Below are positions 8,040 to 58,797 of a stretch of 64,000 nt of DNA, piece by piece. Numbering within the stretch: the first letter of the stretch is position 1; every line of letters starts with the position of its first letter. Source of the DNA: Dicyema japonicum (taxonomy: Eukaryota > Animalia > Dicyemida); NCBI GenBank assembly GCA_011109175.1, contig RDEW01000003.1, positions 731,643-795,642 on the forward strand, given 5' to 3'. The position numbers and the translations under genes are program-made. The notes under the pieces were generated by a model. That model had not been told where the DNA came from, searched no databases, and saw nothing but the letters and a program-made list of their open reading frames with translations.

Positions 8040-8485
8040 GTAGTCCCATCGTTTATTAGTGATTGTCCGTAAATCGAATGTTATCTCTTATAATGATGAG
8101 GAAACCCCTACCACGACGGTTTGAGCGGTCCATACGGATGCAGTGGTATCCTGGAAAATGGGGGGTGGGTGATGATGGAGTAAGTCTGCTTTCTTGAAGT
8201 AAAATCAGGTCAATGTTCAGTTCTTTAATGAAAGACCGAATTTTGCTTTTAAATCCGTTGATGTTTATCTGTAGAATTGAGGTGGAGGTCCTAAATTAAG
8301 TTCAATGTCACCGGCGATAATTATCAGAAACCCATTCAGCCGAGGGGGATTAAAAAAGGGAAAGGCCGTCATCCGAAGATTCCTTCTTCGGATGGGAGGT
8401 AGTTAATGGTACTTTTCCGCGGTGCATTAAGTGCACCCTGAGCGCCTCCCAAACTTTCATAACTAGTCGACCACATGACGCCACG
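8040..8485 (-). mobile_element. 5' end of an APE-type LINE: structured 5' RNA, ATG, 2A-like peptide, APE N-terminus (Ingi/Vingi-like layout)
   Basis: From ATG at 8372: MTAFPFFNPPRLNGFLIIIAGDIELNLGP; after a frameshift, ILQININGFKSK...NIDLILLQESRL...GYHCIRMDRSNRRGRG. Confidence 0.75.
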
Positions 8486-9675: not shown

Positions 9676-9998
9676 TAGCCACATGGTGCCACGTGGTGCT
9701 TCGTGTCTAATTGTTGAAGTTTCTGTTTGTTCTCCTGTTCCTTCTCTCTTCCTATTAGAGTGGCGTCATGTGATCCACTGTTTAGGTGTCGCCCAGTGCC
9801 TGGCTGGCACGAAAAAGGATCATTTGCTCTCCTCCACTCCACTGGAGGGGTTTCAACAACTGCAACTATAGACGTCTATTACCCTTTATGCTGATTCCGG
9901 ATGGACTCTGTTTCTGTAGAAGTAGTAACTGGATGCACTTAATTAGTTGTTTACTTTAACTTCTTTCTCGGTGTATTTAGGGATAATAAATAAATGAA
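9676..9998 (+). mobile_element. Non-tRNA SINE-like element (~320 bp), family copy 1
   Basis: Similar copies at 12737-12995(+), 36985-37240(-), 53545-53860(-), 57520-57802(-); AATAAATAAA-type tail; no ORF of known family. Confidence 0.8.
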
Positions 9999-11199
9999 AT
10001 GACTACTTTGGCAAGTGAGTTGAGATTGAGTTTGGAAACCATGTTGAAAAGAGGTAAGTTTGATGGACGTATATATCTTTTAAGGAACAGTTTTTCCGAA
10101 ACACCAGAAAGCACAGGGATAATAAAAAGTGTTCAATAAAAGGAAGGCAGGCTGGTCTTATTGATACTTACTCAAGATAATAAATTAAGGGAGATGTATA
10201 AAACAAGTTTCCTAGTTTTTTTTAGCCATACGTGTGTGTACGTGGGATTTAAGAGGAGTATTAGAATTTAAAGGTATTATTATCACCAACGATGCTCCCT
10301 ACCAAGACAATCCTGGTTCAGCCAATTTCATTTTCATATGTAATCCTTCTCACCAAGTATCTGGCGTATATGCAGTATCTCCCGATCACCTGGTTTAATC
10401 CTGATTAGAATGGAGACTAAAGATTATGTGCGTCTTATAACCAATTTATTGGTCGAATGTTCAGGTGGTGATTTTTAAGCATTTCGAGACAACTCCATCC
10501 CTGGACACAACCAGATAATTTTACTTGACAATCGTAGAGAGAGAAAGCTCACTAGCGCTGGTAAATATTTTGTCAATGCTCATTCCTATTTGTTCCTTTA
10601 TTTTTATAAACCCTGAATACACTAAGAAAAAAGTTAATAGTTAATGACTAATACTTTCCAGGTCACAAAAGTAGAAACCTTCTAATATCCCGTAAAGATC
10701 ATGCAGTTGTGAGACTACTGATCCCCTTTAGTGCTGTCCAAGCAATAGGTGCTGCTTGAGACAGAAGGAACACATTATGCTACTCTTGTTGAACATGGAA
10801 AAAAGTACAGAAATGAGGAGAAATCTTCATAATTTATTTCTAATTATCCTGAGAATATTAAATAATAAGCTAATTAATTCATAACTTGACCTATTTAACT
10901 ATTCATTAAAATAAACATATTAATTAACTTTTTATTAAATCATTGTTAAATTTTAAAATAATTTACATCTCACTTCATCGACGTGGATTAAGGTTCGAAG
11001 CAACTTTGTATGATAATACCAATAAAACCTTAAAGGTTCTCTAAATATCAATTGATCAAAAGTTTTTGAATAATTATTTATTTAGAAGATAATTAAGAAG
11101 GAAAGTAAAAAAATATCAATAATATAAATATTAAAAACATGATTAATTTTATTGTTTTAGGGTGGTTAACCAATTTAGCAATAATACATCAACTATTGA

Positions 11200-12104: not shown

Positions 12105-12425
12105 TTAGTTAGTTAAGAGCTCTTTCGCGAGCCCTAAGGGTTTTGCTTGAGCCACCCTTCGCCCACGCCATCTTGTTTATGCTTGACATTATTTTCATTG
12201 TACAATTTTATAGAGAATGAAAAAAAACAAATAATATGAAAATTTTTATTATTTTCGTATCTTGCTAAAATTCACCATACAAGGAGCCGCATCGCTAATA
12301 ATTATAGGTGGGAGGCCACCCTTCCAAAAGATGTAGAGGGTGGAAAGTTCAAACGGTTCTCTTTAGTGCATAACTTGCACCGGGCGCCACCACAACAACA
12401 GGTGAACCTCATGTCGCCACGCTAA
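12105..12425 (-). mobile_element. Divergent relative of the SINE/LINE 5'-structure family, probably non-autonomous
   Basis: GTGGCGACATGAGGTTCACCTG...GGTGGCGCCCGGTGCA...TGCAC shares the layout of 8406-8482 and the SINE; GC-rich 3' hairpin GCTCGCGAAAGAGC followed by (CTAA)n. Confidence 0.5.
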
Positions 12426-12736
12426 AGTTCAGAATTATCTTCCTCGGTGATCTTGGAGTTAAATAAATAAAAATCGCTAATAAATAAAATCAGATTTGAA
12501 ATTTTAATAGGAATTTGTCATTAGCGTCTCTTTGTTTGAACTATAACATTCAAATGTACTGAATTTACATCTGATTTCACGATGTATAAAGTCTCTGGAT
12601 TACAAATTTCCCAACAATTACATTTAATATTATTTTACATTAATGTTAATAATTATGTTTTATTTAAAAAAAAATTTATTTTTGAAATAGCACAGTGTCC
12701 TATTTTTTGTCTTAAATAAGGTAATTTCTATTAAAG

Positions 12737-12995
12737 TATTAGAGTGGCCAGTAGCGTCATGTGATCCACCTGTCTAGGTGACGACCAGTGCCAGGCCGGC
12801 ATGAAAAAGGATCATTTGCTCTCTCCCACTCCACTGGAGTGGTTTCCACAACTGCATGTAATGGACGTCTTACCCTTTATGCTGATTCCGGATGGACTCT
12901 GTATAAGTGGAAACTGGATACATACACTTAATTAGTTGTTTTTACTTTAACTTCTTTTTCTTGGTGTATCCGGGGTTAATAAATAAATAAAATAA
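12737..12995 (+). mobile_element. SINE-like family copy 2 (5'-truncated)
   Basis: High similarity to 9750-9998. Confidence 0.8.
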
Positions 12996-16225: not shown

Positions 16226-16839
16226 TAAATAAAATATTTAATTCAAATAAAATATTTTTTTTTTTAACTTTAAAGTATGTAAAGTTGTTTTAAATTTTGT
16301 TTTTTGCCGAAAAGTGAAGACCATTTTTAAAGTCTCCCATTTTGTCACTTACAATTAAAAAAATAGTTTTTGCTCCGAAAAAGGGAACCGCAATACCAAT
16401 CACATAATTAGAAAAAATAAAACATTTCGCTCACGGAGGTTATGTGTGTTATGTAGAAAAATCTTTTTTGACTTATAAATCCACAGTTTCGACTTAAAGT
16501 TGTTTAATTATTAAATTTTTATATAATCACATTACGGGAAGCTTTGGAGTTCGTTTATGAGCACAATGCGAAAATTGCAAGTTGATAAAATGAACTGAGA
16601 TCCTAGTAATTGCAGATGGGTGCTCGAATGTTGCTGAAACAACAACCCCATTTAGAAATCTCACATCATCTTATGGATCAAGTTTGATAATGTCGAGGTT
16701 CACCATGAATGTGGTGATATTTTGGAAAAAAAACTCTTCCTATCTCTACAAGATGGAATCGCAAAGAATTCATACCCAAGTTTTTTAGTTATTAACCCCG
16801 GATCACCGAGAAAAAAAGACAAATTAATGTCAACTAGTT

Positions 16840-20589: not shown

Positions 20590-22900
20590 ATCCGCGAGAA
20601 GAAAATTAGCGAATGTACAGTGCCTATGTACTTTTGTCACATCCAGATCGCCCACAATTTTTAAAAGAAGCAACCTCCAGAACTTTCCTGTGATTAACGT
20701 CTTCAGAGTCCCCGAGGAGAGATCCAACATTCTTGCATGTTCTCTACTTTTACTAGTTTCTCGCCGTGCAACGGGACATGCTAGTTCTTTGCGTTTTGTC
20801 TGGGTTTACTACCAGGGACCAGTCCTCCAAGCCTTGAGGGATCACTTTTAGTGTTGTCTCCAGTGTATCCCTATCCCAGCAGACAAAATCAATACCATCG
20901 GCGTAGATTACTTCCATCAAGTTAGAGAAACAATTCTTTTTTAGGAGAGGTTTTAGAGCTGCCTCTAGGTATATTATGATTAGAGCCGGAGATAACGAGT
21001 TTTCCTGTAGTCCGCCGGAGTCGGTTTTAAATCTTGTTGAGTTGTAATTTCCCACGCGCACTGATAGGGATGTGTTGAAGAGTAAAAATCTGATCATTCA
21101 TGATTCATACTCGTTTAAAATACTCTCCATTACGTGCATTAGCTTCTTGCGGTCAATCGTGTAAGTCAATTCCAAGGATTGAGATTTCTTCTTTGTTTTT
21201 CTGGCACATTGCACACATCCACCCGTGGCTTCATGCAGCATCTGCCGTCGACCTTCCAGCTCTGAATCCACGTTGACTTGGATTCAGGAACTCATTTACA
21301 GAGCCTGACAAACTATCCAGCACAACAAGGGAGAGTATTTTTCTCATCCTATTCATTGGTGTGATCGGGCGTAGGCTGTTTAGATTTCCTCTTTCCTTAC
21401 CAGGTTTCTGAATTGGGATCAATGTGCCATTACCCACATCAAATAGACTGTGACTTTGAACGTTCTGTTCAGTACTGTGCATATAAACTCAGCCACTCTG
21501 TCTGGCGCGTATTTCAATAATTCTGCATTCACGTTGTCCGGTCCAGAGGCTCTGCCATTCTTGAGCTCATCCAAGGCTGAGACGACTTCGTAATGCGTGA
21601 TGCTTTGATTAACGTCTCTGGGAATTCCTTCGAACGGTTCAAAGTGTTCATTGAGATTTAGTCGTTTTTTGTCGAGATCGGCAATTTTATTTGCTGATTC
21701 TAGCCTTTGATTATTACTTTTTTCTGTATCATAAAAAACTGTGATTCTTTCCGGTCTGGTATTGCGAGATAATTGTTTAACCGCAGTTAACATTCTTGCA
21801 CACTGAATGTACCTTTCAGCGTCTTTTGTCAAGTTATCCAGTGTATGCCAGGCTAGTTCCCTCACTCTTCTCTTTATTTTGTATTTGATTCTGTTGCGTT
21901 CTCTTTTAATAGAGTCAGTTTGGCTTGTCGAGTCTGACAACTCTATTAAGAGTCGGAGTTTCCTTTTTTTGTAACAGTTCTTCGATTTCTTTGTCAAAAG
22001 TTCCCTTGAACCTCCTTGGGCGATTTCCCAGTACCATTCCAGCAGGCTGTCTGACTCTGATAGAAATATACTTTTTACGAGTATTGTCTAAAGCATATAG
22101 CGCCTCCATGGCTAAGGTCCTGCTCCGCTTACATGCTGCCAGTGCTCCAGAGATTCCAAAGCGTCGCTTTATAATGAGACGTGCCACTAGTAATCTGTGA
22201 TCACTCGAGGTCATTATACCACTGCACGTTCAGGAGTCTGTGAGTAGCCCCTTCTGTGATTGCCTGCATAGTATGAGGTCAATTTGATTAATTATATGGA
22301 CTCGATTTCCACAGGAGTCTCTTCTCTGCCCTGTCCACGTCGTAATATATCGTGCTGCAAGCGGAACCTCGTGTTACAAAGGAATAGTCTAAATGACTCG
22401 CAGAAATGTATAAAGGCCTCCCCGGACAAATATCTGATCTATCCAGCGTGGCTGCCCAAGCAATTGGCTCGTCCCGCTTTTCCCCCAGTTTTGAATTCCA
22501 GTCTCCCTCCATGAAGAGCATGTAGGAGTCTGACAGGGTGGTAGAAGCCAATGACGAGTAGAAATTGTCAAGTTCCTCTGCATACACTCACTGTTGTCGG
22601 TGCATATAATAATCAATAGAGTAGTATTACGGTTGTTTCCGAGACGTAGTTAAAGGACGGCAATCCTGTCGTCGATATTCCACTCTATGACCCACCACAG
22701 ATGCGCCCACGTGTATAGTGACCTAATCCCACAATGTCGACAGTCTGGCGCCAACAGGAGCAGTCTATACCCGTCATTGTTTCATCCAGGTCATTGGGGA
22801 CTTAAGTTTCCTGGAGACAGCATATACCTCTCACATTGAATAATCCAATAGTGAACAGGAAAGATTGAATCCATGAAGAAGACATTTGTGCAAAGGAGGG
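20590..22900 (-). mobile_element. Longest copy of the RTE-like LINE (APE + RT), decayed and 3'-truncated
   Basis: APE: IG.FNVR, CCLQET, DDRIAVL, GDWNSKLG, SDHRLL; RT: GRASGPDNVNAELLKY, LIPIQKPGK...LRPI, SQRGFRAGRSTAD, LSPAL..IYLE, YADG. Confidence 0.9.
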
Positions 22901-26813: not shown

Positions 26814-27497
26814 ATGACCAAGTGGGAGATCTTAGAAAGAGTGTGTTATGTCCTGAAAACGAAATCAATGATGACTACTAAATCTTCATCCAAACTCCCA
26901 GGCCATAAAGAAAAATCCATTAATATCTTACATCTGGGTTTGACACTTGAAGAAATAAAGACTGGAAAAAATTACGGATGTAAGATTATGCAAAAACATG
27001 GCGAATTAAGCCAAGTCACTAATTTTTATGTTTACCCTGGATGTGAAAGTGGGACCATAATTAGATCCGAAGGAACGGAAGAAATCAACTTTGCAATTCA
27101 GATTTTTGCTGAGCCACATCTATTCTATATGAGAGATGGTGCCAACTTGATCTACACAGCCAAGATTTCAGTGCACGATATAATTTCTAGTAATCCTATT
27201 ACAATTCCTTTGCTGGGAGGAGGGATAAAGGAAATGCATCTACCTACACCATTTAGTTCTGCTTCTGAATTTTTAATTTCTAATGAAGGATTACTTTTCC
27301 CTAACAATCCTGATGAAATTGGATCTCTTATAGTTAAATTCGAAGTTTTATATCCTTCAAAATATCTAAATAAAAATTTAACTGGTTTTATTAATACTGA
27401 ACTACAAACCCTTGAGGGACATTCGTCGAGTATTTCTGTACGTAATTACTTCATCAAGAGGCTTGCACGTGAATACTTGTCAGTTAACAATGAATGA
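26814..27497 (+). CDS. Protein with DnaJ/Hsp40 (class B-like) C-terminal peptide-binding domain; no J domain visible
   Basis: LGLTLEEIKTG, YPGCESGT.I, EPHLFYMRDGANLIYTAKIS, IPLLGG, NEGL..PNNPDEIGSLIVKFEVLYP follow the DnaJ_C consensus; acidic upstream exon with a 28-nt intron at 26702-26729 is in a different frame. Confidence 0.8.
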   Translation: MTKWEILERVCYVLKTKSMMTTKSSSKLPGHKEKSINILHLGLTLEEIKTGKNYGCKIMQKHGELSQVTNFYVYPGCESGTIIRSEGTEEINFAIQIFAEPHLFYMRDGANLIYTAKISVHDIISSNPITIPLLGGGIKEMHLPTPFSSASEFLISNEGLLFPNNPDEIGSLIVKFEVLYPSKYLNKNLTGFINTELQTLEGHSSSISVRNYFIKRLAREYLSVNNE

Positions 27498-36984: not shown

Positions 36985-37240
36985 CCAAAAAAAGTTAAAA
37001 AACTAGTTAAATGTATCCAATTTCCACTGCTACAGAACAGAGTCCATCCGGAACCAGCATAAAAGGTAAAAGACGTCGATTGATTGCAGTTGTGGAAACC
37101 CCTTCAATGAAGTGAGGGAGAGCAAATGATCCTTCTTCGTGCCAGCCTGGCACTGGGCGCCATGGATTACATGACGGCACTCTAGTAGGAAGGGAAAGAG
37201 GAGTAACAAACAAAACAAAAAGAAAACTTTAACCTATTAA
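36985..37240 (-). mobile_element. SINE-like family copy 3 (internal deletion in the 5' structure)
   Basis: Reverse-complement similarity to 9750-9998. Confidence 0.8.
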
Positions 37241-49056: not shown

Positions 49057-50900
49057 CAACAACAACAACAACGATTTATTGACAAAAGAGTTAAGGAGAT
49101 TTCTGGAGGGTATTACATCTGAGTCCTACCATAAGGCTTGGACTCCACACCTGGACCCTTTTTCCTTTTTTTATTATTAATCTTTTTCGGAACGTTTCTC
49201 CCAGCTTTTTAATCTTTATTCTTCCAGCTTTATGTATGTGTCCTGGACCTTTGATCTCCTCCTGAAACCATTGATCCGATCCTCCACAATCTTGCTAATC
49301 GGTTCCAGGAGCTGTTTTCGTCCTCGTTAGACAGTCTATCAGTTTCTTTTTTAAGGAGAGCTCAATTGCAGCTCTTCTAGCTTCTCTAGGAGGGATAAGA
49401 TCTTGTCCCTTTTCGGAGGAGAAAACCACCCTCGCACCCATAAAGAGCTAGGGGAGAATAACTCCCTTGAAGATAAACAGTAAGTGTCACGGCTACGTGT
49501 AACTTCCGTGTACATAAGAGCGACTGAAAGGCTCTTTTCTCCTCCCTTTATGTTGTCCATGTAATCTCCTGCGTGTCCATAGTCGACCCCCAGGTAGCGC
49601 AGAATGTGTGAATTGTTTACTCACAGTGTGAATTCTTGTTTCAGGTGCTTTTTCTAACTGCTTATTCGGAGTGCGCAAGATTTTTCAGCAAGACCTTTAG
49701 CCCTCTCAAGTTGCACCAATGCTCAATCTGGTCGACATTCTCCCGGATTCTTCCTTCGGATATAGAAGATTTTAGAGATGTGTCCACCACGATTACGTCA
49801 TCCGCATAAATACGAAGACTAGTATTAATATTCCTCGGACGTGGAAAAATCGCCATAAATATATTAAACAAAATAGGGCTCAATACTGAACCTTGAGGGA
49901 CTCCTCTTTTGAATGATATTGCATCAGATATATATCCACACACCTTCACAAAAGATTGTCTTTCCTGAAGATAATTTCTTAGCCAAACAAATAGGTATCT
50001 TGGAACATATGCTGATACAAGCTGCTTTAACAACGCTTCATGGCATACACTGTCGAATGTTTTCGAGATATCAAGACATAATAAGTTTATTTGTCTCTTG
50101 GAATCCTTTGCTTTTATGATTTCAGAATTCAGTAGAAAGAAACAGTCTGTACAGCCTCTTCCGGGACGAAAACCACACTGCTCCGGAATCAGAAAGTTGA
50201 TTTCTTCTATATGTCTACTTAGCCTTTTGAAAATGATACGTTCAATCACTTTCGCGAAAGAACATATTAAGCTAATTGGTCTGTAGCTTGCCGGATCTCT
50301 CTTTGGCTTCCCTGGTTTTGGAATCATCCTCACAACAGCTTTCTTCCATATTAAAGGCAAGTGGCCAAGTCGCAAACACCCATCATAAAAACATCGCAGA
50401 TAGTCAAACAAACTATCCGGACCCTCTTTGATAAGTTTCATTGATATGTGGCCATATCCTGGAGCATTGACCTTGCATTCCCGGATAGCTGTCATCACTT
50501 CAAAGTTGCTGACAGAGCTATCAGCAATAGGTAGTTCTTGTCGGAGTGTTCAAATATATCGGCAGACACCTTTTTTTGTCATCAGGGATCAAACTCCACG
50601 GATCCACACCCTGAATTTTTTGGAGCTGATTCCTGAATATCGAAGGTGTTTTCTTCGTTATGCATACTCCCCCGTCTGGTTTATCCAATATAATTTTTTC
50701 TGGACCCGACTTCGGACACATTATCTTCTGATAGCATTTCCAAAAAAAGGGATTCTTCATATCAATTTTTGCAGTCTCAGCCCTTCCCCTCATAGTTGTT
50801 AAAACAACGATAGAAGAACTCGATAACCTTAAAAATAGCTTACTCCCAGCTAGAAACGAGGTACTTACTAAGTAACCGAACAAGACCATTTCCGAGAAGG
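49057..50900 (-). mobile_element. Jockey/I-group-like LINE RT with (GTT)n tail
   Basis: ORF 49662-50498: WKKAVV.MIPKPGK...SYRPISL, EQCGFRPGR, LDISKTFDSV, GVPQGSVLSPILFNIF, IYADD; 3' end AATAAATCGTTGTTGTTGTTG. Confidence 0.9.
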
Positions 50901-52849: not shown

Positions 52850-54720
52850 GGCCAAATTGCTTTATCTCGCTGATATCCCTTATATGTACTTGCAACACTT
52901 CTTTAAGGACTCTATAGTTAATTTACGAGACATAGTCAGGCAGTGAGTTGGCTGTTTTTGTAACGAATCAATATGTCTTCAAAAGCATAATGATTAGTGG
53001 ATAGAAGAACATAACCTCTGCTCGACTATAATTCCTGTCGATATATTTCTTGTTATATGTTAGTGTTCCTTTTCCAAGGATGTCAAAAAAGAGAAACTCA
53101 ATATGATTTCTGATGCTCTGGAATAGGTAAACAGTCAATTTAGTGTAGGAATCTACAAACAAGGAGGCGTAATTGTTAGACATGGGAGATTGGGGCACAT
53201 TTTTCATAGTGGTCTATGGAAAGGTGGATTACTGGGTGATTATTAGGTTGAAGTCTTGTAGGAAGTGAACAATCAAATCAACTCATTAAGGGAATTGAAT
53301 AAAGGTGACTTTTTTCGAGAACAGGCGTTACTTTAGTAATATTGAATCTTCCAGTTTGGCTGGAGTGGGACTAAAAGACATGAAAATATTAAAAAACTTT
53401 ATGATTAGGAAGATTCGGCCATGTAGAACTAGTAATAATAAAATAATAAAGGAAAAGTTCTAGTTAGGACATCAAAATTTGTATCAAAGTGTCATATAGT
53501 AAACTCCCACCAAGAACTGCATAATATAAAGGAAAAGGACATTTAATTTAATTGATTAACCCCGAATACACCGAGAAAGAAGTTAAAGTAAACAACTAAT
53601 TAAATGTATCCAGTTTCCACTTCTACTGAAAGAGTCCATCCGGAATCAGCATAAAGGGTAAAGAGTTTCAGTTGTGGAAACCCTTCCAGTGGAGTGGGGG
53701 AGAGCAAATGATCTTTTTTCGTGCCGTCCTAGCACTGGGCGCCACCTAGACAGGTGGATCACATGACGCCACTCTAATAGGAAGAGAGAGGAGGAAAAGC
53801 CGAACAAAACAGAAACTTCAATCAATTAGCCACGAAGCACCACATGGCGCCACGCGGCTAGGATTTTTAATCTAGGAAAACGACATAATATTGTTATATA
53901 ATAATCTCCACATAATAATTTTAAATTTATTGAAACAAAAAATTAAATATAAAAAAATAAAGTGATTATATTATTACAATTAGATTATTTACTACATTCT
54001 GAGATTCACGATTTGTATATTTACTAGAGGAGGTCACTTTGGGAGGAGAACCATGGGTTAATTACGAAACAAGTCACTCTTTTACTTAATTTAGGTAGCA
54101 TTTCTTCGAGGAGACAACCAGATTTTCTTTGGGATGTGTTATAATGGCCATTGGGTACCTGCACACTAATGGTATCGTCTACAGATACATGAAGTTGAAA
54201 ACCTAATGATTGACTCACAGGGATACATTAAAATGGTTAATTTCCTCTTATTTTAGGATGACTTTGGATTTGCTAAGAGACTTTCTAAATGCTTTAAACA
54301 TGGACACTCTATGGTACTTCTGAATATGTAACCTCTGAAATAACCCTCAACAAAGTACATGAATGCTGTAGATTATAGGATTTTGGGGTACTTATATTTG
54401 AGTCACTAAGTGAATGGTATTCTTATTTACTCACTACAGTCTCCCATTTGTTGAAAAGATCCATTATTAATGTACAAACAGATCTTTAAAAGAGTCGCCT
54501 TCATTGACTATCCCTGATTTGTCGGCTTACGAGTTCGTAGTTTCATGTCTTCAGTATTTAAACCGTCACTTTTTGAACGTCTTGGATTTACTAAAAATAA
54601 TATTGATGAGATTAAAACACATACGTATATTCTCTCTTTTATATTTCAGACGTTTCAGGGATTTGATGCCTAAGCTGTCTTCTTTAAAACTTAAGAATAG
54701 TTTACTCCCCATTGTAATGA
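52850..54720 (+). pseudogene. PRKG1: cGMP-dependent protein kinase (PKG) pseudogene with 21-25-nt introns, interrupted by a SINE
   Basis: Colinear PKG motifs: YKQGGVIVRHG..TFFIV..GKV, LRELNKGDFF(G)EQALL, TL*LGRFGHVELV, KCHIV, LFTTF*DSRFVYLLEE.TLGGE, TTRF..GCV..A..YLH.NGIVYR, NLMIDSQGYIK, DFGFAK, TWTLYGT.EYV, DPL.MYK.I, ERLG..KN.I.EIK.H; many stops and frameshifts. Confidence 0.9.
53545..53860 (-). mobile_element. SINE-like family copy 4 (most intact), inserted in a PKG exon
   Basis: Full-length match to 9676-9998; kinase reading (KEKDI...) resumes after it. Confidence 0.85.
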
Positions 54721-57519: not shown

Positions 57520-57802
57520 ATATTATTTATTTATTAAACCCGGATACACAGAGAAAGAAGTTAAAGTAAACAACTAATTAAGTGTATCCAGTTTCCACTT
57601 CTACAGAAACAGAGTCCATCCGGAATCAACATAAAAATAAAAAGACGTCCATACTTGCAGTTAGAAAACCCCTCCAGTGTAGTGGGGGAGAGCAAATGAT
57701 CCTTTTTCTCACCGACCAGGCACTGGGCGCCACTTTAATAGGAAGAGAGAAGAGAAACAGACAAACAAACATAAAACTTGAACCAATTAGCCACGCAGCA
57801 CC
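57520..57802 (-). mobile_element. SINE-like family copy 5 (deletion between the two GTGGCG motifs)
   Basis: Reverse-complement similarity to 9676-9998. Confidence 0.8.
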
Positions 57803-58797
57803 AGTCTAACATAAGAACCCTTGATAGAGAATTAATCATTAAAAGCAAATGAGGTTAGTGAATCAAATAAAATTAATTATTCCCATTTTCTTTGATGAAA
57901 TTAATCATTCCAAGAATGAAGGAGTCATGCCATTTCTCTTTCCAAATTCTTAGCAAACAACTTCCCCAACTCTACTCTACTAAGAATCACCCCCATTAGT
58001 CAAAAGAGTTGATCCCTCTTTCCACGAATAACTCTTTCCACGAAGATTTTATGATATAAAACGCTACTATAACCAAATCCAATCAACGCTCACAAAGAGA
58101 GCGCACAAAATCGGGAAATAACAAATGAAGAGCTTGGCCTGTAGAAAACCTGTCACGTGGTTGAAATGGTCTTCAACCATCTGCGAATCTGAGAATTTCC
58201 CACTGCTTCTAAGCTCAGATATGACTTTCTGAAGGGACTTCCCCGTCATTAGTCCCTCTGTTTGGGGCAGAAAGTTGCATAGAAGAATCTCACTCATGGC
58301 TAACCAACGTGCTACATTATGGTGTTTGAAATCGTCATGGACCTGATCACATTGGAATCACATGGGTCCCTTGATGTAAGAACTGGTAAAGAAGTGCTGT
58401 CCGTCAGTCCTCGGTTTTCTCCACACGACAGGACCAGTTTGATAGTCTACAGCCCTCCACTCTGGCACGTGCTCTTTTCTTTGGTCTCCATATCCGCTTG
58501 CTGTAGGTAAGATGGGAATCAGTGGAGGTACTAAAGGTCACAAAATAACGGACTTGATTCTACAGGAGGATTGCATGAGTAAGGACTCCCATCAGTCCCA
58601 TTAACAAGAAAACCTACAAAAATGAGTCAAATTGAGAATAAACGTTAGTTCTGGCATCAGTGTTCTTTAAGTGCTCATCTACGGCGTTGACTCTGACGAG
58701 GAACTCTGAGAATTTTTCCATTCTAACGAAAACCGCGACTGAAAGTCCAATTGCGGACCAAACAGAACAACGTCCACCAACCCACTAAACATAACTA

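Follow-up and report, generated by a model that had tools for sequence, protein, structure and literature searches.

HDV-like folds at the 5' ends of LINEs are known from R2, RTE and L1Tc, where their cleavage sets the start of the element. In L1Tc of Trypanosoma cruzi, the first 77 nt serve as promoter and as HDV-like ribozyme, the protein carries an N-terminal 2A peptide, and both ends of the LINE recur in a short non-autonomous element (PMC3383444). The L1Tc/NARTc pair is the closest known system to the LINEs and SINEs of the dicyemid Dicyema japonicum that are analysed here; a literature search found no paper describing dicyemid repeats or ribozymes. The window is the 64,000-nt stretch of DNA that was analysed, and all genome-wide counts come from searches of the animal's own assembly (67,542,437 bases, 377 contigs). 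The SINE family studied, SINE-A, carries a module of 62 nt that is predicted to fold like the HDV ribozyme.

L1Tc/NARTc and ingi/RIME resemble the Dicyema elements in the HDV-like fold within the first ~77 nt of the LINE (PMC3185411, PMC3383444), in the 2A peptide at the N-terminus of the LINE protein and in the short elements that share the first ~77 and the last ~30 nt of the LINE. However, the L1Tc ribozyme L1TcRz cleaves 5' of +1 and the elements begin at the ribozyme, whereas the Dicyema copies inherit a leader of ~3-20 nt. Unlike in NARTc, the module lies ~90 nt inside the element in SINE-A. The Dicyema start codon is placed inside the fold, the host is a dicyemid animal, and cleavage by the Dicyema knot is at most putative.

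The layout of SINE-A is closer to that of Leishmania SIDER2 than to that of NARTc or RIME: SIDER2 is a short, degenerate retroposon in which the LINE 5' signature (Pr77) occurs twice, in whole or in part, at the terminus and again internally (PMC4035085). The terminal copy in SINE-A is, however, only ~20 nt long and folded back into a hairpin, and the mRNA-destabilising cleavage of SIDER2 is no feature evidenced for SINE-A. R2 and R2 SIDE share with the Dicyema elements a double pseudoknot with few invariant bases at the LINE 5' end (PMC3774820, PMC3414825), and the R2 SIDE elements, derived by internal deletion, retain the 5' fold as well as the 3' end. R2 inserts site-specifically in rDNA and its ribozymes were shown to cleave, with a cut site matching the 5' junctions, whereas the Dicyema junctions argue against cutting. 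With HDV and CPEB3 the module shares the helix order P1-P2-P3-P1'-P4-P2', a J1/2 of 2 nt and a C at the start of J4/2. It differs from them in having no P1.1, no conserved L3, a G-C cut site in the SINE and a J4/2 of 6-8 nt, and no Rfam HDV-like model matches it. The Dicyema LINE-T, with an N-terminal 2A-like NPGP motif placed just before APE, resembles the animal 2A-bearing APE-type LINEs (PMC3708506); the abstract of that paper describes no start-codon RNA pseudoknot.

The SINE-A family and its LINE relatives

The original prediction, made from the letters of the window, had described five copies of a SINE-like family. BLAST of the 53.7-kb copy against the window confirmed all five, which are listed here with the parts of copy 1.

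9676 to 9991, plus strand: SINE-A copy 1, full length (BLAST; 100% anchor of the genome search)
12750 to 12985, plus strand: SINE-A copy 2, 5' truncated ~15-20 nt before the module, module at 12753-12815, GACGCC subfamily (BLAST, direct reading, covariance model)
53551 to 53860, minus strand: SINE-A copy 3, full length, module at 53708-53770 (BLAST; cmsearch 89.7 bits)
57528 to 57803, minus strand: SINE-A copy 4, 5' half of the module (P1a to L3) deleted between two GTGGCG repeats (BLAST, covariance model)
36991 to 37239, minus strand: SINE-A copy 5, both ends truncated, module at 37126-37178 without P3/L3 (BLAST, covariance model)
9676 to 9709, plus strand: 5' terminal hairpin of copy 1, its 5' arm similar to the LINE 5' terminus, mutated in this copy (fold of near-consensus copy, 30-copy alignment)
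9710 to 9761, plus strand: CT-rich linker of copy 1, its last bases TTAGAGT aligning with the LINE leader TTAGCGT
9762 to 9823, plus strand: 62-nt module of copy 1, P1-P2-P3-P3'-P1'-P4-P4'-P2' (cmsearch 78.4 bits; direct reading)
9834 to 9850, plus strand: hairpin after the module of copy 1, CCACUCC ACU GGAGGGG (direct reading; homologous hairpin in LINE-T)
9922 to 9991, plus strand: 3' tail domain of copy 1, common to LINE-like 3' ends, ending GGGGTTAATAAATAAA

A whole module of 62-63 nt was present in three of the five copies, and internal deletions were found in two. In the module of copy 1 (9762-9823), P3 has lost 1 nt and a G of P1' is replaced by T; the module of copy 3, already named as the clearest, is the best preserved (89.7 bits). 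What remains in copy 4 (57697-57746) is without P1a through L3. The deletion in this copy (57697-57759, minus strand) extends from one to the other of two GTGGCG repeats that form the P1a and P1b contexts, as if it had arisen by slippage or recombination between the P1 arms.

In 30 aligned copies, the SINE-A unit is ~320 bp long and starts near TAGCCGCGTGGCGCC, followed by the CT-rich linker, the module, the hairpin, the body and a tail ending GGGGTTAATAAATAAA. The 5' end of a near-consensus copy folds into a 34-nt hairpin with a 14-bp stem and the loop AUGU. This copy is 91-96% identical to other copies, which indicates that the family is young. A first look at the assembly gave 1,816 candidate copies, with best matches ~88-90% identical to the window copy; the estimate for the genome is about 1,400-1,800 candidates. 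The exact 18-mer opening the module occurred 470 times (reversed control, 0). The hallmarks of TPRT, TSDs and an A/T-rich tail, are present; TSDs of 10-24 bp flank the copies L006, L010, L013, L016, L023, L024 and L029. The copies L006 and L007 (G000:C90:125492, C90:162509) lie ~37 kb apart in identical flanks, which points to a segmental duplication on contig C90. The family had been described as not tRNA-derived and as having no Pol III A/B boxes. In agreement with this, ARAGORN found no tRNA in the window, Rfam gave no match in the SINE head, and the SINE-A consensus carries internal TTTT runs (T4), which argue against Pol III transcription.

The helices drawn in the original prediction were borne out by direct reading and by the covariance model, with small refinements. 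P1 is GGCGUC/GGCGCC, P2 has 7 bp (GUGAUCC/GGAUCAU), and P3, up to 4 bp long (ACCU/AGGU), closes GUCU. J1/4 of SINE-A is CAG, P4 is UGCC/GGCA and J4/2 is CGAAAAA. The hairpin behind the module is perfect in the 12.8-kb copy, as had been proposed, but it reads CCACUCC/GGAGGGG in most copies. The 12.8-kb copy does have the U-A for U.G in P1 and the C-to-T change at the first base of J4/2 that were ascribed to it, together with two additional P1 mismatches; its U-A pair is a subfamily trait also seen in L013, L024 and L030. At 9768-9773 of the window, as in all SINE-A copies, the inherited start codon is immediately followed by a stop (AUG UGA), making a minimal start-stop unit within the knot.

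The 5' end of LINE-T can be aligned to positions ~84-196 of the SINE, from the leader (TTAGAGT vs TTAGCGT) through the module and the hairpin (z = 21). The last ~70 nt of the SINE resemble LINE-like 3' ends, including that of the LINE-T in L067, with ~70-91% identity over 50-90 nt. The 5' arm of the 34-nt hairpin repeats the LINE 5' terminus, namely leader, GGCGCC and AUG. The view of the family as a RIME/NARTc-like non-autonomous derivative therefore holds for the LINE-derived 5' segment and 3' tail but not for the layout, since the module is not at +1: it starts ~90 nt inside SINE-A, behind an added hairpin and the CT-rich linker. A module at +1 of the element was found in small LINE-T derivatives (L072 and window 12105-12430). 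The relatives in the window are the following.

8406 to 8482, minus strand: LINE1 module at the LINE 5' end, with a G1.U wobble and an 11-nt L3
12353 to 12418, minus strand: 5'-terminal module of LINE-T type in a short element spanning about 12105-12430
10603 to 10790, minus strand: decayed SINE-superfamily relative whose module, at 10719-10781, is worn
16786 to 16839, minus strand: 3' end of another element, with the SINE tail domain

The LINE1 sample consisted of window 8406-8482 and 29 other copies, the LINE-T sample of window 12353-12418 and 11 other copies. In LINE-T, J1/2, between P1 and P2, contains an AUG whose frame includes a 2A-like motif and the APE domain. From this AUG the frame runs for ~45 codons to the motif NFNLL.QAGDIKPNPGP in most copies (L069:1520-1930 (+); L062-L071) and then to APE, a layout that recalls, by analogy, that of L1Tc. 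An internal deletion has reduced the LINE-T at L067:1489-2990 (+) to ~1.5 kb, removing RT but sparing APE and both ends; the element has a 12-bp TSD (GCGTTAGTAAAC). L072:1430-1635 (-) holds a possible mini-element of ~125 nt, in which the LINE-T leader, module and hairpin are joined directly to a TTTAATAAATAA tail. Its limits are approximate, and the flanking repeat is only 8 bp long, A/T-rich and ~115 nt beyond the tail.

Covariation of the fold between families

The five window copies belong to one repeat family, so their agreement reflects common descent and does not amount to five independent tests. A loose descriptor of the HDV topology gave 4-15 matches per shuffled window and was rejected as evidence; because it is this unspecific, the topology alone is insufficient and the comparison between families is the real test. 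MFE folds of single modules had unremarkable z-scores and competing nested folds, the method being uninformative for a pseudoknot. Two covariance models were used to find the module in further element families. It was found in LINE1, in LINE-T, in SINE family B, in the LINE-like family C and in worn SINE relatives. The families were compared at the majority level, parsed with hand-set segment lengths, and their P2 strands read as follows.

SINE-A: 5' strand GUGAUCC, 3' strand GGAUCAU
SINE-B: 5' strand UGGAUCC, 3' strand GGAUCCA
LINE1: 5' strand GUGGUCU, 3' strand GGACCAU
LINE-T: 5' strand GCGGUUC, 3' strand GAACCGU
Family C: 5' strand GUGGCUC, 3' strand GAGCCAA

Compensatory changes occur at five of the seven P2 positions among the families A, B, LINE1, T and C. 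In P3 two C-G pairs are kept and the fourth pair switches between U-A and A-U (UA 32 vs AU 27 cells, where cells count copies, not events, and the independent lineages are only ~5). P4 is a hairpin in all families, differing in sequence and length. For the pairing statistics a model-based alignment of 82 matches (80 distinct rows) was used. In this alignment 86.7% of the cells were paired, compared to 35-57% with slid partners, and the covariation score was 0.254, compared to at most 0.11 with slid partners; P4 of LINE1 and the P2 3' strand of families B and C are misaligned by MAFFT and by the covariance models, and such rows were scored as broken. P1 is nearly invariant. It shows one compensatory change, C-G to U-A in three copies of family C, and is also supported by the one-sided change of U.G to U-A and by the conservation of GGCGCY amid variable neighbours; its position 5 is mismatched in families T and C.

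It is because of this covariation between families that we accept the fold as being beyond chance. The HDV-like helix order proposed for the window copies is upheld, since covariation is seen in P2, P3 and P4 among five families of LINEs and SINEs, and a compensatory change in P1 of one of them. As predicted from these alignments, the module is a nested double pseudoknot with the order P1, P2, P3, P3', P1', P4, P4', P2'.

The SINE families A and B have the same head plan, and their P2 differs by two compensatory pairs. The A-type P2 was found in 2 genomic copies behind a LINE-type leader, compared to 595 behind the linker. Three module variants were common to at least three SINE-A copies, a C-to-U change giving U.G, a loop change and U.G to U-A, and all three fit the fold. 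Such shared variants affect 3 of 63 sites in the module and 17 of 144 in the linker and body, a deficit that is modest. The compensated P2 difference between A and B, the near-confinement of the A-type P2 to the SINE and the fit of the shared variants to the fold make selection on the fold within the SINE lineage likely. An extinct LINE with an A-type module could have been a recent donor, and for this reason selection within the SINE is likely, not proven.

Element 5' ends and the candidate active site

If the module cut 5' of G1, the copied RNAs would start there. The CT-rich linker precedes G1 in at least 93 of 100 unselected SINE copies, taken in contig order. Among the 595 copies with the opening 15-mer, 10 are without the consensus T at −1, and unrelated DNA reaches right up to G1 in ~3 (<1%). 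LINE1 copies keep ~3-11 nt before G1; not one of the 30 begins exactly there, and a single copy has its truncation point within the module. The leader is also kept in all 12 LINE-T copies, with ~11-20 nt before G1 and 0/12 starting at it, and in L067 the 20-nt leader lies inside the TSD. Self-cleavage 5' of G1, judged by this genomic proxy, was negative in the SINE, LINE1 and LINE-T. Since the copies do not start at G1, cutting at the predicted site does not define the element 5' ends, and the caveat that copies extend upstream of the predicted cut turned out to apply genome-wide. A shortfall of the upstream 10-mer (185 vs 307) was considered as a sign of copies starting at G1 and rejected; it represents a linker subfamily, CTAATAGAGT.

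The inverted P1.1 that had been suggested between L3 and the junction did not stand. L3 ranges from 4 to 11 nt with unrelated sequence between families, and its first U pairs with its last A as the covarying P3 pair. No P1.1 between L3 and J1/4, the pairing that makes up the active site of HDV-like ribozymes, could be drawn consistently across the five families, and J1/4 itself varies (CAG, CGG, CAA or CAU). The would-be cut site is G-C in SINE-A, B, T and C, and G.U is found only in LINE1 (GC 40, GU 25). All five families have a C within the first two bases of J4/2, for which a role as the catalytic C is only putative; J4/2 of family B differs from that of the other families. Rfam gave no match at the gathering score, nor at E <=10, over four variants of the SINE, LINE1 and LINE-T modules. 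Few bases are invariant among the active ribozymes of R2 and the L1Tc clade, which are far from the HDV consensus (PMC3774820, PMC4035085), so the Rfam failure is compatible with activity. Nothing in the sequence analysis indicates the working HDV-like ribozyme that had been envisaged, and a residual self-cleavage of the module, weak or regulated, appears improbable from these features.

Possible roles of the knot

As judged from the alignments, the module is a LINE-derived, HDV-shaped pseudoknot inside a LINE-mimicking SINE. From 5' to 3', the SINE consists of the 34-nt hairpin, the CT-rich linker, the whole 5' end of a LINE with its leader, 62-nt module and following hairpin, then a unique body and a LINE-type 3' tail. 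In the parent LINEs, the module contains the predicted start codon and is followed by the 2A-like peptide and then the endonuclease. The knot would no longer act as a ribozyme defining the 5' end and is probably a conserved, non-cleaving structural signal. By analogy, it may serve at the LINE 5' end as an RNA signal that acts in translation start or RNP assembly or that offers the LINE protein a handle, and the SINE, by retaining the knot and the 3' tail, would imitate its LINE at both ends. The R2 protein binds the 5' pseudoknot of the R2 RNA, a precedent for a non-catalytic 5' signal. SINE-A is a young, abundant family made up of LINE parts, and on balance we lean towards its knot being a structured RNA signal rather than a ribozyme that sets the 5' end.

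Could the module still be a working HDV-like ribozyme, a new variant lacking P1.1, with a J4/2 that is long and rich in A and, in the SINE, a G-C cut site, which cuts some transcripts, for example to yield translatable or decoy RNAs, while the uncut RNAs are copied? The helix order is correct and backed by covariation, a C occurs within the first two J4/2 bases of every family, and LINE1 has the G1.U wobble. The order of fold, 2A and APE matches L1Tc, which has an active ribozyme formed by its first 77 nt (PMC3383444), and active ribozymes of the L1Tc clade and of R2 depart widely from the HDV consensus (PMC4035085, PMC3774820). We nevertheless consider such a ribozyme unlikely, because G1 starts <1% of the SINE copies and none of the 30 LINE1 or 12 LINE-T copies, L3 and J1/4 are unconserved with no consistent P1.1, no Rfam model matches even at E <=10, and family B has a different J4/2. 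It is just as doubtful that the fold works only in the LINEs, around the start codon, and that the SINE copy is a passive, recently inherited relic. Such a relic would fit a young SINE with copies ~4-9% from the near-consensus copy, a module that sits in a longer block inherited from the LINE 5' end and a variant deficit that is modest (3/63 module sites vs 17/144 in linker and body). It fits poorly with the two compensatory P2 pairs by which the SINE families A and B differ within the same head plan, with an A-type P2 that occurs in almost no LINE-type copy, with three shared module variants that all keep the fold and with several independent short elements that retain exactly the same LINE segment.

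That the module is conserved as DNA, for an internal promoter similar to Pr77, with only incidental RNA pairings, is the least probable explanation by far, as it leaves the compensatory changes in P2, P3 and P4 unexplained. The P1 5' arm and the AUG are nearly invariant and recur at the extreme 5' end of the SINE and of every LINE family, the LINE leaders of only ~11-20 nt make an internal promoter necessary, and Pr77 in L1Tc is promoter and ribozyme both (PMC3383444). It may well be that the invariant 5' part serves as a promoter in addition to the RNA fold.

Returning to the preferred reading of a structural signal, the Dicyema elements differ from the known systems in that the fold is kept by compensatory change in the LINEs and in mid-SINE, the copied RNAs are uncut at the predicted site, and the LINE start codon is inside the knot, ahead of the 2A peptide. 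The comparison suggests that the fold has a second job, translation start or RNP recognition, which is able to outlive or replace catalysis. The Dicyema LINE/SINE pair would be an animal system parallel to L1Tc/NARTc of trypanosomes. There is a small chance that the module is either a working ribozyme subtype without P1.1 and G.U, or a ribozyme-descended, non-catalytic handle that the SINEs need for mobilisation by 2A-type LINEs; if this were true, dicyemids would provide the animal counterpart of the trypanosome Pr77/L1TcRz.

Some further features of the LINEs were observed. A tandem duplication at L065:1422-1608 (-) has a 121-nt unit with the LINE-T module and hairpin. LINE1 also has a 2A-like motif (LELNPGPP in L038), with upstream stops at the same places in both translated copies (window 8250-8400 (-); L038, L044). 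In the window, 49662-50498 (-), 20753-21482 (-) and 26814-27497 (+) hold two RVT_1 (Pfam) remnants of LINE reverse transcriptases and an ORF with a DnaJ C-terminal domain.
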